This document shows positions 1,016-13,198 of a stretch of 64,000 nt of DNA, piece after piece; within the stretch, counting starts at the first letter, position 1, and every line of letters starts with the position of its first letter. A program made the translations under genes and the position numbers. The stretch spans positions 1 through 64,000 of the forward strand of contig NW_020846941.1 of the NCBI RefSeq assembly GCF_003704095.1, read 5' to 3'. The notes beneath the pieces were generated by a model. The model was not told where the DNA came from. It did not search any database and was given only the letters and a program-made list of their open reading frames with translations. Source of the stretch: Pocillopora damicornis. Lineage: Eukaryota.

Positions 1016-1240
1016 TCAATTTTGCATTTGATTGCGAGGAAACTCTTCAACAACACCACTAAGCAGGGTCAAAGACATGGAACAATCTTTTGCTTCCTTC
1101 ACGGTAGAGCTGAAAAATCCACCAGATCCTTGTTTGTTCATGTCCACAGCTATAGCTTTATCATTTGTTGGTCTTGAAGTGCAAAGCTTTCCATCAGCAG
1201 GGTTGAAGTACATTATTTCTTTGTTGGTCATGTTCTCCAT
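1016..1240 (-). CDS. Small uncharacterised 74-aa protein (IMYFNPADGKL...AIAVDMNKQGSGGFF + C-terminal extension)
   Basis: ATG in good context (AAG ATG G). Possible 5'UTR splice acceptor near 1287-1289 on the minus strand and AATAAA downstream near 743-748. Divergent from the kinase gene. No family securely recognised. Confidence 0.6.
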   Translation of the reverse strand: MENMTNKEIMYFNPADGKLCTSRPTNDKAIAVDMNKQGSGGFFSSTVKEAKDCSMSLTLLSGVVEEFPRNQMQN

Positions 1241-1449
1241 CTTTGTGCTTTTATCAGCGTTTTAAGAGCTTAAGGCTATGACAAAACTGTAAGGTGATGT
1301 TCTCCTCGATTTCCTCTGGTACCCTGGATTACTGATCAAAGTCTTGCTGACTTCCACACAAGCCAACAACGAGCTAATGAGTATATGTTCGATAGGGGCT
1401 CTCAATCAGTTCGTCGAAGATGACTTGTTTGTCCTAATCGTCGACGAAA

Positions 1450-1546
1450 TTCTCAGAAACATCGGAACTGACTGTCAATATCCGTCGCTCCGCCCTCTAA
1501 AGTAATTTGAAAGACAGGTCTTCTTTGTCTTCAGGTATTCTCGGAA
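1450..1546. promoter_or_regulatory. Two STAT-type GAS palindromes between the divergent small ORF and kinase
   Basis: TTCTCAGAA at 1450-1458 and TTCTCGGAA at 1538-1546, both matching TTCYNRGAA. Confidence 0.45.
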
Positions 1547-2302
1547 ATTAGAAAGTTGTTCTTTGTGATCAGACCTCTGAAATATGTAACGCGTCTGGCG
1601 AAAGCAAAACTTGCTGTGAATGAAATCACAGAACCAAAAAGAACTATTGCCACCGTTGTTTACCGCTCAACAGCTTACAGGACCGTGACAGAATAATCAC
1701 TGTAAGCGACCCGAAACCATATGACCCTCGGAGACGAGCCAGCCCGGCATACAAATATATTCGATGAGTCGCTAATCTGTTGTCATCAGTATCCATACAT
1801 TTGATGCGAAGAGCGTTCGTATTCCTTTTTCATGAAACAGACTATCACAACGACTAGAACTGGAACAAATAAGAAATTTGCGGAGGAAAAGAAGACTCTA
1901 GTTTCAAATAAAGGTAAGTTCAAAAATAGGAAGGTTGAGAGAACAAGTCAAGAAATATGATATAAACATAAGTTATGCTTTTCGGTTGACACCTATATCT
2001 GAATTAGTTTTTAGTGCATTAGCGATCTTCGAAACTTAACTCGCGAACATCGCGTGACAAGCGCTTCCTGATGAAAACAAATTAAATATTTTCGTTTCAC
2101 TAGTGGGAGTATCGCAGTGACATCTCATCGCCTGCAGCATTTCATTATCATTACTACAGGAGTACAGTCTCTCCTACTAACATTAATAAATGCATCCCTA
2201 TGTTGGCCTTTTGGCCTTAGTATTTCCTTCTCCGGCGGAACTTGGATAAAAACAATTGCCTCTGTCTCATTTTACAGGGAAGTAACTTAAGAGTCAGTTA
2301 AA

Positions 2303-10643: not shown

Positions 10644-12090
10644 ATTACAACCAAGTTGAACTTTGAACTTTACACTCAAACTAACATGGCTGTTTGTAAC
10701 GGTACACTTTATGCTTGCTTTATTCAAAAACTGCAATTTCCACTTCACAGCTAAAAGGATTTCACAGATTTAACTTCCTTTTCTCCCTGGTCAAGAGAAC
10801 TCATGTACCTCTCTTAACAATCAATGCAAAATATCTAGACATCGTAACCTGCGTTTTCTTGGGCTCGAGTCTTGTTACATGTCCTCACTTTGAGTTCTCA
10901 TTGGCTCATTGTGCCATTTTACTTTTTTGTGATTGGCCAATATGTTAACTAAGGCTTGTTCTCTAGAACTTAAACGAAAAGGGCCCCCTGCCCAGTAATA
11001 TCATGTGAAACGTGCCTAGGGTAATTTTCCCTGATTAAATCATAAGACTCTGTCCAAAATTTGCATCTATAGCAACCAGATCATTAATATTAAATATATG
11101 CTTAGTATTAAGCTCTGAATCGCGGTACTTTAAAAGGAAAGTTTTATCTGTTTTACTCCATAGCATAAATGTCAGAAGCTGTACCTAGTGAAATTATTGA
11201 TAACCTGGATTATGTTAATTCCCAAAGAGTACTGAGTACATTAGATTAAATAAAAATTGTGCAAATTTTTTTTGGGCAATTCCTTTATTTATAAACAAGA
11301 CCTTAAGTCATAAAAAAAACATCCACTTTTACCATGGCAACAAGATTTTAGGCTTTCCACAACAAGATGCTCCGACATCTCTTCCTTGCACGTTCGGGCT
11401 CGCAGGAATATATGGCTTTGAAAAGTATTTCACACCCTCATATCTTTTTTAATCCAAGTAAGACTAAATTTGGAGCTTTCTGAATAAAACAACAACAACA
11501 ACAAGAGATGAATAAACAACACCGAAACGCAAAAAGGGCTCAGACATACTCTCGCTCCGGCAAAACAAATTTTCCGCAAACAAACTCACTGGAGCCTCTT
11601 TTTTCTACATAAAATTCGAGACCAGTACGTCACGTTGTAACATTTGGCTTTCGTGACTAATATGAAGGATAAACAGGAAAAGATTGTCACACGATCACTC
11701 ACAATTTTGTGGACTGAGCTGCATAATCAATCCGCAAAGATTCTGAGATGAAACTGTTCCAACAAAATGTAAAAAGCTGTCAAATTCATTTAATTTTTGG
11801 TCTGTTTTGACCTGTTTGTCATCCGGCGGGAGTTTTTCGTATTTTCAGAAGGAATATGCGAATATGTTAATTTTTCACACCGACTCTGGAATGATGTATT
11901 GCGTTATTCTCTGATTAGCTTTATTACGGGTGTAAGAAATACTTAATTGATTTTTTAGCCGGGCACGTCATCCTTATCAGAGAGACTGAGAAAGCATTAT
12001 GTGGATTTTTTTATTTTCATTACTTTAATGACTGCTCTAAACTCATTGTTTTTGGTCACGCGGAAGCATTCACTCAAGTGTTTCCGTTTC

Positions 12091-12318
12091 TTCCAGGAAA
12101 ATCTCACAAAAGAATCATCATATTAGCCTGAGGGCTGTAACGAAACTGAAAAATATTAGCAGAACTGAAGTTTCGAAGCCTCTTTCACTCGCACAAAAAT
12201 AGCAGAACGCCGAAAACGTTTATTCTAAGCTATGTCTGCATAGCCTGAAAGTTCGTCTAGTACTCTTACACTATCACTCGATCGAGTTTGTTTACGGTCA
12301 CACAACAATTTCTCGGAA
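12091..12318. promoter_or_regulatory. GAS and ISRE-like motifs upstream of JAB paralog 2
   Basis: TTCCAGGAA 12091, GAAACTGAAA 12142-12151, TTCTCGGAA 12310. Positions correspond to motifs at 7622, ~7663 and 7850 in paralog 1. Confidence 0.55.
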
Positions 12319-12409
12319 ATTACGATATTCTTATAGGGCATTGTTTGTCGGCGAAAAGTCACCAGAACCACGTTTCAAACCAGCCACAGTTCAATCTTCA
12401 CTTGCAGTG

Positions 12410-13198
12410 ATGGCCTTTTTAAGTTCAAAGGAGGGAGACGTCCATCAGAGGAACTTTGAAGTTGTGATCTATGAAGAAGATTACAAACAGCTTTGCGCTT
12501 GGGTGCTCATGAAAACGAACATCGAAACTGGTGGAGATTTGTTTGGTTTATGGGCTGAAAAACACACCGCTGTTATTCAGTTTGTTGTCGGTCCTGGCCA
12601 AAATTGTCGAAGATCTTCAGTTTCTTTCTACCAAGATGTCAGCTACTTGGAGGAGATTGGTTCGCACATGACAAAAAGTGAAGGCGTTTGTCATATTGGC
12701 GAGTGGCATTCTCACCATCAACTTGGTCTCGCCAGGCCAAGCGGAGGAGACGAGAATACTGTATGGAACAACATGCCCACCTACAACTTGAAGAGGTTCG
12801 TGATATTCATCGCCAATTTAGAGCAGTCAGAAAAAGGCTCCTTCAGTGTGAATATTGGCTGCTTCCTGTTTGAGCTTGAGAGTGTCAATGGAAACGAGAA
12901 ACGACTTCCGGTATCGCAAGGAACGTTCAAAATACTGCAAAAAGAGAATCCATTGAATGGGAAACTGTTGGAGAAGAGAAACGAAGGTGCAGAGTATGAC
13001 GAAAAAGAGGTAGAGATGAAAGATCTGAAGCTAGAGATATCAGATGACGGACCCCCCCGAGTAACTTATGTTATAGAATCCTCACCCCTAACGAAGAGAA
13101 AAAGACGACATCATGAAGGCAGATCTGCCTCGCCTGGAGATGAATCAGTGGATGAAATGATTGAACCTAACAGGAAGAAAAGGTCCTCCCGTAAGTAA
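12410..13198 (+). CDS. JAB/MPN+ metalloprotease-domain protein (paralog 2, ~262 aa, no repeat array)
   Basis: Same ETGGDLFG and HIGEWHSHHQLGLARPSGGD motifs. The first ATG of the ORF is at 12410 (the track start at 12341 is TTG). Core is near-identical to paralog 1. Confidence 0.88.
   Translation: MAFLSSKEGDVHQRNFEVVIYEEDYKQLCAWVLMKTNIETGGDLFGLWAEKHTAVIQFVVGPGQNCRRSSVSFYQDVSYLEEIGSHMTKSEGVCHIGEWHSHHQLGLARPSGGDENTVWNNMPTYNLKRFVIFIANLEQSEKGSFSVNIGCFLFELESVNGNEKRLPVSQGTFKILQKENPLNGKLLEKRNEGAEYDEKEVEMKDLKLEISDDGPPRVTYVIESSPLTKRKRRHHEGRSASPGDESVDEMIEPNRKKRSSRK

Follow-up and report, generated by a model that had tools for sequence, protein, structure and literature searches.

Conjugation machinery of the Cap2/Cap3, Bil, and Bub types, which acts in bacterial antiviral defence, has come to be understood only within the past few years. 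In type II CBASS (antiphage signalling by means of cyclic oligonucleotides), E1/E2 activity attaches a flexible C-terminus and a JAB peptidase reverses the attachment; the E1 and E2 are joined there in a single E2–E1 fusion, Cap2. The Bil (BilABCD) and Bub systems combine an E1, an E2, a peptidase, and a small modifier in defence-type neighbourhoods, and their modifier is a β-grasp ubiquitin-like protein (Ubl). Here, we describe a gene cluster of the coral Pocillopora damicornis, located at positions 1,016–13,198 of the first 64 kb of contig C3576 (NW_020846941.1; these 64 kb are hereafter the window), that encodes a small peptide, a protein kinase carrying four repeat domains, and two JAB/JAMM peptidases. 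On balance, we read the cluster as one branch of a domesticated bacterial four-gene peptide-tagging kit, consisting of an E1, an E2, a JAB peptidase, and a small peptide, whose tag the kinase would read; how the kit would work is our inference.

Comparison with type II CBASS revealed that (i) the JABs of the window score best against its JAB models (E 1e-17); (ii) the coral E1 and E2, encoded elsewhere in the genome, match the Cap2 and CBASS E2 models, and the structure nearest to the E1 is Cap2 (7to3_A); (iii) the logic of attachment by E1/E2 and reversal by JAB would be shared; and (iv) unlike Cap2, the E1 (419–494 residues) and E2 (136–178 residues) are separate genes in corals and bacteria. 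The kit also has, unlike type II CBASS, a dedicated gene for a peptide of 63–74 residues and a JAB with a Cys-less domain of putative UBC fold, and this domain occurs 4 times on the coral kinase. Gene calling in the bacterial operons yielded no CD-NTase, and none of the 51 Mab-21 matches in the coral genome lies in the 3 coral loci described below. Because no locus has a CD-NTase or Mab-21 gene and E1 and E2 are separate, we do not classify the kit as CBASS. Three Mab-21 (cGLR-like) genes are present on the same contig (C3576:678297–685277), more than 600 kb past the window.

Bil and Bub differ from the kit in having a β-grasp Ubl, where the candidate modifier here is a short hairpin–helix peptide, and in their peptidase, which in the kit is a JAB with an added domain of putative UBC fold; Bub acts via oxyesters, and the kit E2 keeps its Cys. 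Bub makes its modifier as a Ubl–E2 fusion that is freed by the BubCD peptidase, a precedent for a pathway peptidase releasing the modifier. Pup, a short non-β-grasp modifier attached via its C-terminus after trimming, resembles the kit in these respects and differs in its enzymes, PafA and Dop, which are glutamine-synthetase-like; no E1, E2, or JAB takes part. Bacterial E1/E2/JAB operons were catalogued in 2006 (PMC1779556), and the kit operon could not be confidently matched to a class of that catalogue; the bacterial four-gene operon appears uncharacterised. The full-text literature that we searched, the coverage of which is incomplete so that a prior mention is possible, held no account of the kit in animals, of the peptide, or of the kinase fusion. 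Cap2/Cap3-like machinery is thus the known part, and the animal presence of the kit is new, as would be the peptide tag, the JAB-borne recognition domain, and the kinase reader.

Gene content of the window and its recurrence

The contig starts at the left edge of the window, and the host assembly comprises 234.35 Mb in 4393 contigs. RNA evidence was taken from assembled contigs of 4 runs from 3 studies, in which word depth is only a rough measure. The small-peptide gene is a 74-residue open reading frame (ORF) on the minus strand (1016–1240), which is covered in all 4 runs by RNA contigs spanning 642–1468. The kinase gene is transcribed divergently from it on the plus strand. The intergenic region (1241–2302) includes the end of a 5′ untranslated region (UTR) exon at 1911 and a 5′UTR intron (1912–2275), the splice joint of which (1911^2276) was seen in 4 of 4 runs. 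The kinase exon (2303–3338, within the ORF 2303–3352; Pfam Pkinase E 1.3e-38) is followed by a GT..AG intron of phase 1 (3339–3577) and by the repeat exon (3578–4980, within the ORF 3529–4980), which encodes 4 tandem FPxxFP domains of ~110 residues. Because the joint 3338^3578 was present in every RNA run, kinase and repeats form a single message of 812 codons, the gene of which has one coding intron. The first JAB/JAMM peptidase (7929–10643, plus strand) has 904 residues, and the second (12410–13198, plus strand) has 262 residues counted from its first, probable ATG in a frame that is open from 12341. The initial annotation had placed 4 genes at these positions with only one coding-region intron among them; the ORFs bear out the positions, and the splice joint in the RNA contigs bears out the intron of the kinase-repeat gene. 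The word depth of the RNA contigs was 280–880 over the peptide ORF versus 20–37 over the kinase gene.

Two irregularities were observed in the RNA contigs near the peptide gene. An 8-base insertion behind position 1007, in the 3′UTR of the gene, was present in contigs of 3 runs. Positions 423–871 were skipped in 2 runs, with non-canonical ends and 13 other letters between them, and the gap looks like an indel allele and not like an intron.

Both JABs of the window keep the E, HxH, S, and D of the JAMM motif; across 37 JABs, including the window pair and bacterial ones, E39, H100, H102, and D114 are invariant and S111 is nearly so. The match to the prokaryotic, Cap3-like JAB profile of PADLOC (PDLC00890, the CBASS JAB model) is significant (E 1.4e-17 for the first and 7.8e-17 for the second), and the Pfam Prok-JAB scores (19.5 and 22.3 bits) fall under the 25-bit cut-off. 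The 2 intact JAMM proteases proposed earlier are therefore present and are of the Cap3-like prokaryotic type. The first JAB consists of a catalytic domain in roughly the first 180 residues, an acidic repeat array (8740–10193; 14.7 copies of a 99-nucleotide, 33-residue, acidic, Ser-rich repeat), and a Lys-rich tail. The second JAB shares 79% identity with the first and ends in a basic tail; it is 48% identical over 143 residues to the JAB of the cyanobacterial operon described below (E 1e-47). The Lys/Arg-rich C-terminal stretches of both JABs resemble nuclear localisation signals.

The kinase-repeat gene, whose 2 exons were searched separately and not as the spliced protein, encodes a kinase domain of Ser/Thr type with the full set of catalytic motifs (the catalytic Lys, HRDLKPxN, DFG, and APE); its PDB matches are generic (a receptor tyrosine kinase, NEK7, TAK1, and IRE1). 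The 4 repeat units occupy 3610–3933, 3934–4263, 4264–4593, and 4594–4923 on the plus strand. In an alignment of 20 units, W8, Y9, G14, R37, and the F-P-x-x-F-P stretch (F59, P60, F63, and P64) are invariant, and no Cys is conserved, so that the catalytic Cys of an active E2 is lacking. Pfam gave nothing real on the repeat ORF, and matches of the repeat profile to FliG among PDB sequences were rejected as spurious. The AlphaFold2 (AF2) model of a unit (pLDDT 86, pTM 0.78) contains a helix (residues 11–26), strands at 34–37, 44–50, and 53–59, the FPxxFP flap, strands at 68–72 and 75–80, and a C-terminal helix (85–97); that is to say, it has the UBC-type topology of a helix, a β-meander, an aromatic-P-x-x-aromatic-P flap, and a C-terminal helix. 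The best Foldseek matches are E2s, although they are weak (E 0.04, TM 0.4–0.47). The best reading of the model is a non-catalytic UEV/RWD-like domain of the UBC superfold, and if the fold is right, the domain would be of a binding type such as UEV or RWD. The earlier description of the repeats as UBC/RWD-like thus holds for the topology, without the catalytic Cys, whereas the fold match is only middling (Z 5–7).

UEV/RWD readers such as the UEV of Tsg101/Vps23 and the RWD of GCN2 are likewise Cys-less UBC-fold domains that bind and do not catalyse, and GCN2 combines an RWD domain and a kinase in one protein, as the coral gene would. They differ from the coral repeats in that no sequence relation was found, that the coral copies are 4 in tandem and C-terminal to the kinase, and that the coral domain goes back to a domain that accompanies JABs in bacteria. 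Searching with a repeat-domain profile collected 161 protein clusters, including kinases with the domain, JABs with the domain, and an Oculina protein that joins it to Death and TPR domains; the fusion to JAB occurs in corals, a sponge, and bacteria.

Three separate loci with peptide and JAB genes are present in the coral genome: C3576:1–13 kb (the window), C687:92–107 kb, and C268:64–74 kb. The initial annotation had seen no E1 in the window, and there is none; E1 and E2 genes were found in the same genome on C687, together with further JABs and peptide paralogs. The C687 E1 (429 residues) matches Pfam ThiF (E 9.7e-35) and the Cap2 models (5.7e-32), and belongs to a family in which the GxGxxG of the Gly-rich nucleotide loop and the 2 CxxC pairs, C354/C357 and C476/C479, are invariant. 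Its structural model matched Cap2 best (E 2.9e-18), followed by BubCD as the second-best match and then by Atg7, UBA5, and ThiF/MoeB; MccB is also among the matches (E about 4e-13). The C687 E2 (178 residues) matches the CBASS E2 model (1.4e-5), and 5 further E2 paralogs lie elsewhere in the genome.

The gene order of the window recurs in other corals. In Oculina patagonica (L001), a peptide gene is followed by 2 kinase-repeat genes, a degenerate JAB with 2 repeat domains, and a peptide paralog; in a second coral (L002 and L007), the order is peptide, 2 kinase-repeat genes, and several JABs. Peptide homologs adjoin kit genes in L001, L002, L005, L006, and L008, in the sponge locus L015, and in the bacterial loci L017 and L018. 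Recurrence of the order in Oculina and the second coral and linkage in the sponge and in the bacterial operon bear out the co-location that the initial annotation had proposed to look for, and support the view that the window genes form one conserved module. A mere coincidence, with 4 unrelated genes side by side and a small ORF that arose by chance within a UTR, as might be suspected from the rarity with which function organises animal gene order, is hardly credible given that the neighbourhood recurs in 3 corals, 3 loci of this genome, a sponge, and a bacterial operon, that 2 independent fusions (peptide–E1 and JAB–repeat domain) link the families, and that the peptide motifs are kept from bacteria to corals.

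The bacterial operon and the origin of the coral genes

The bacterial counterpart is an operon that encodes a JAB with a C-terminal FPxxFP domain, an E2 (136–154 residues), a 63-residue peptide, and an E1. The four-gene form was found in Halomicronema, a cyanobacterium, and in Cryosericum. The 63-residue gene ends 5 bases before the E1, and in Aerosakkonema and a whole cyanobacterial clade it is joined to the E1 as an N-terminal fusion. Its product carries the F-D-P-x-T-G hairpin and the G-F-F of the coral peptide. The E2 has a conserved Cys-His, within the motif ICH[FY], and is one of the obligate genes of the operon. Not every bacterial relative is in such an operon, since the E1 homolog of Acaryochloris, which sits on a long branch in the tree described below, has no JAB, E2, or peptide gene adjoining it.

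Among animals, the coral E1 has close relatives in further anthozoans and in Oscarella, a sponge, and its next relatives are cyanobacterial ThiF proteins at 45–57% identity; the coral and bacterial E2s are 41% identical (E 1e-40). In Oscarella, the E1 and JAB genes are divergent neighbours with a peptide ORF between them, and more JABs and a gene for a JAB-like protein with the repeat domain lie beside them. A maximum-likelihood tree placed 51 animal-type E1s on one side of a branch with 100% support, with the sponge group, then octocorals, and then anemones and stony corals in order. This pattern agrees with a single old acquisition and subsequent vertical descent, and not with contamination or repeated transfer. 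Because the tree was rooted only at its midpoint, the direction of transfer was taken from the organisation of the bacterial operon. The operon match, identities of 41–57%, and the E1 tree together uphold the bacterial origin that the initial annotation had raised as a possibility.

A search of GTDB genomes with the coral E1 returned only a 1483-bp contig, JAKSDK010001693.1, of a Phycisphaerales metagenome-assembled genome. This contig encodes the last ~40 residues of a coral-type E1 at 75% identity, and is probably coral or other cnidarian host DNA that was binned into the assembly. E1 C-termini of both bacteria and animals (P0300–P0419) carry the motif acidic-x-[FI]-F-[GAS] at 0–5 residues from the end, and in the clade with fused peptide and E1 the motif is the exact C-terminus (..FFG).

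The neighbours of the operon include a STAND NTPase (NB-ARC/HTH_VMAP-M9), a ParE toxin, an HNH nuclease, and GmrSD in Aerosakkonema (L013:5012–6370, minus strand), and a patatin and an Mrr nuclease in Cryosericum (L018:1–1421). These neighbourhoods look like defence islands, and we regard a defence role of the operon as putative.

The small peptide and the proposed tagging pathway

The conserved core of the peptide spans residues ~9–43, that is, ~40 residues, and consists of a hairpin motif (aromatic-x-F-[DN]-P-x-[TD]-G-K-L) followed by G[FW]F, which is encoded at 1112–1120 in the window. Conservation stops exactly at G[FW]F. The tail behind it differs in length and sequence: it is 2 residues long in bacteria and 3–31 residues in corals, with 31 residues in the window peptide, and in the fused cyanobacterial clade its place is taken by the E1 itself. 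Pfam gave nothing real on the peptide, the ESM Atlas gave no usable match, and sequence inspection found no signal peptide in the animal peptides. An ORF of L002 (~12.9–13.2 kb, minus strand) repeats the hairpin motif F-D-P-x-T-G-K-L 4 times and one of L004 (2373–2885, plus strand) repeats it twice, both without a G[FW]F end; the product of such a tandem ORF may be a multivalent partner of the kinase, through the 4 repeat domains of the latter.

Three properties make the peptide the likeliest modifier of the kit: (i) it is the obligate fourth gene of the operon; (ii) its conservation ends at G[FW]F, behind which it has a disposable tail, as Ubl precursors have; and (iii) a JAB is always present, and the Bub peptidase likewise frees its modifier from a fusion. 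The FPxxFP domain is carried on the JAB in bacteria, which suggests that it is a peptide-recognition module and, therefore, that the coral kinase with 4 copies of it reads the tag. We thus propose, with the odds leaning somewhat towards it, that an early animal acquired the bacterial kit, that corals multiplied its parts under shared GAS-type (STAT-like) promoters, and that the putative UBC-fold domain was copied 4 times onto a protein kinase to give a new coral gene. In such a pathway, the JAB would cut the precursor at G[FW]F or just behind it and so take off the variable tail, the E1 would adenylate the new C-terminus and hand the peptide to the E2, and the E2 would attach it to targets, from which JABs could also remove it. 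The 4 putative UBC-fold domains of the kinase would bind the peptide hairpin, free or conjugated, and the kinase would turn tag abundance into phosphorylation, probably within an inducible immune response. Conjugation, JAB processing, inducibility, and an immune role are putative, being suggested by their context, namely the GAS-site enrichment described below, the Death-domain fusions, and the defence-island neighbours in bacteria. The full pathway, in which a non-ubiquitin peptide of ~40 residues in sponges and anthozoans is trimmed by JAB, attached by E1/E2, and, in stony corals, read by a kinase through 4 UEV-like domains as a STAT-inducible immune signal descended from a bacterial defence operon, is a more tentative proposal, possible but on the doubtful side.

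If this reading is right, the kit would be an animal descendant of bacterial defence conjugation that has been kept since before the sponge–cnidarian split, its tag would be a short peptide and not a ubiquitin fold, and corals would have a new type of reader, namely a kinase onto which the recognition domain of the kit itself was placed 4 times. It would offer a concrete route, testable at the bench, from bacterial defence operons to animal signalling, and a co-regulated gene set to follow in studies of coral immunity and stress.

Several observations weigh against the tagging reading. The initial annotation had named a GGFF peptide; a small conserved peptide with G[FW]F does exist, but the di-glycine is not conserved across homologs. 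The peptide does not have a β-grasp fold: AF2 models it, in its fusion with the E1, as a helix, a hairpin, and a short helix. Since this part of the peptide–E1 fusion model is ordered (pLDDT 73–85), the peptide could be a fixed piece of the E1 and not a released tag. The repeat domain gave VIA Z scores of 5.3–6.7 with Cap2-E2, FANCL, the UEV of Tsg101/Vps23, and RWD domains (6.4 with the Tsg101 UEV, 5.9 with the RNF25 RWD, and 5.3 with the GCN2 RWD), scores that unrelated folds equal, and hhalign found no significant likeness between the repeat domain and the kit E2 beyond the FPxxFP/VPEEFP stretch. The genes do not form one tight cluster either: a junction of the C687 end with the C3576 start was considered and is not supported, because in another coral the E1 and kinase clusters lie inside different large contigs. 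A complex prediction of JAB residues 1–200 (from the ATG) with Zn and the 74-residue peptide scored 0.22 and 0.09 against a mark of 0.34 and gives no verdict either way.

The natural fusion of the peptide to the E1 N-terminus across the cyanobacterial clade, together with the ordered helix–hairpin–helix of the model and the lack of a conserved C-terminal Gly-Gly, could also mean that the peptide is not conjugated but serves as an N-terminal part of the E1 that can come off, either as a split subunit or as an allosteric ligand, and that it binds the E1 and the putative UBC-fold domains non-covalently while the JABs, E2, and E1 act on another substrate. We consider this unlikely, though it deserves real weight. 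A purely structural piece is hard to reconcile with conservation that halts at G[FW]F and gives way to variable tails; moreover, peptide genes have multiplied beside JABs at loci without an E1 (the window and C268), and the RNA coverage of the peptide far exceeds that of the enzyme-like kinase gene.

The conserved C-terminal motif of the E1, which is its very end in the fused clade, the disorder of the E1 tail in the model, and the position of Cap2 as the closest structure would suit a CBASS-like scheme in which the conjugated moiety is a protein's own C-terminal tail, that of the E1 or of another partner, and the peptide is an adaptor. This is improbable, since the motif is missing in some otherwise complete operons, such as that of Cryosericum, and the 3 coral loci contain no CD-NTase or Mab-21 gene, the nearest on the contig being those beyond the window mentioned above. 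Still less do we expect a pathway of ribosomally synthesised and post-translationally modified peptides, in which an MccB/PaaA-like E1 would modify the peptide C-terminus and the JAB would trim it, with no protein being tagged. The substrate is short, E1-like enzymes act in this way in microcin C biosynthesis, and MccB does appear among the structural matches of the E1; against this, the Cys-His E2 is obligate in the operon, the E1s of Cap2 and Bub match better than MccB, no exporter or immunity gene was seen in the neighbourhoods of the bacterial operons, and the animal peptides lack a signal peptide.

Upstream sites and neighbouring genes

The initial annotation had pointed to interferon-gamma-activated-sequence (GAS) palindromes, TTCN3GAA, upstream of the genes. 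Three are present between the peptide and kinase genes (1410, 1450, and 1538), 5 in the region upstream of the first JAB (6900–7928; at 7177, 7311, 7394, 7622, and 7850), and 2 upstream of the second JAB (11700–12409; at 12091 and 12310). The 3 regions together have 10 sites versus 1.67 expected, a number that 0 of 300 shuffles reached, and the region of the first JAB alone has 5 versus 0.65 expected (0 of 300). Window positions 1–13198 have 19 versus 7.8 expected (0 of 300), whereas the rest of the window has 19 versus 22.9 expected, a number reached by 47 of 60 shuffles. The palindromes are thus ~6-fold enriched in the 3 upstream regions but not over the whole window (38 versus 30.8 expected), and an N4-spaced control motif was flat throughout.

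Because the upstream regions had been picked after the sites were seen, the enrichment test was repeated on other loci. In 6 other coral loci that contain these gene families, one of them the E1/E2 locus, the sites exceeded expectation 2- to 3.5-fold (a number reached by 0 of 100 shuffles at every locus), and the N4 control was flat there as well. No TTCN3GAA enrichment was seen at L007, a further coral locus, or at the sponge locus. The sites support shared control by a factor that binds GAS palindromes, for which a STAT would be the obvious candidate. Among the transcription factors that poly(I:C) induces in Nematostella is STAT5A (PMC13319465).

Beyond the cluster, tandem genes for rhodopsin-like G-protein-coupled receptors occupy 14718–26193 of the window, including 14718–15752 (minus strand) and 18663–19682 (plus strand); fragments of the array around 22.1–22.9 kb and 25.4–26.2 kb are broken by N gaps. 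Genes of this receptor type flank the JAB/peptide loci on C268 (L005:1649–2638) and in the second coral (L007:16537–17478) as well. An ORF at 36426–37235 (minus strand) encodes 269 residues, the C-terminal half of which is Pro/Gly-rich, and lies in a GC-richer stretch (0.46), and an ORF at 40614–41369 (minus strand) resembles the ligand-binding part of a nuclear receptor.

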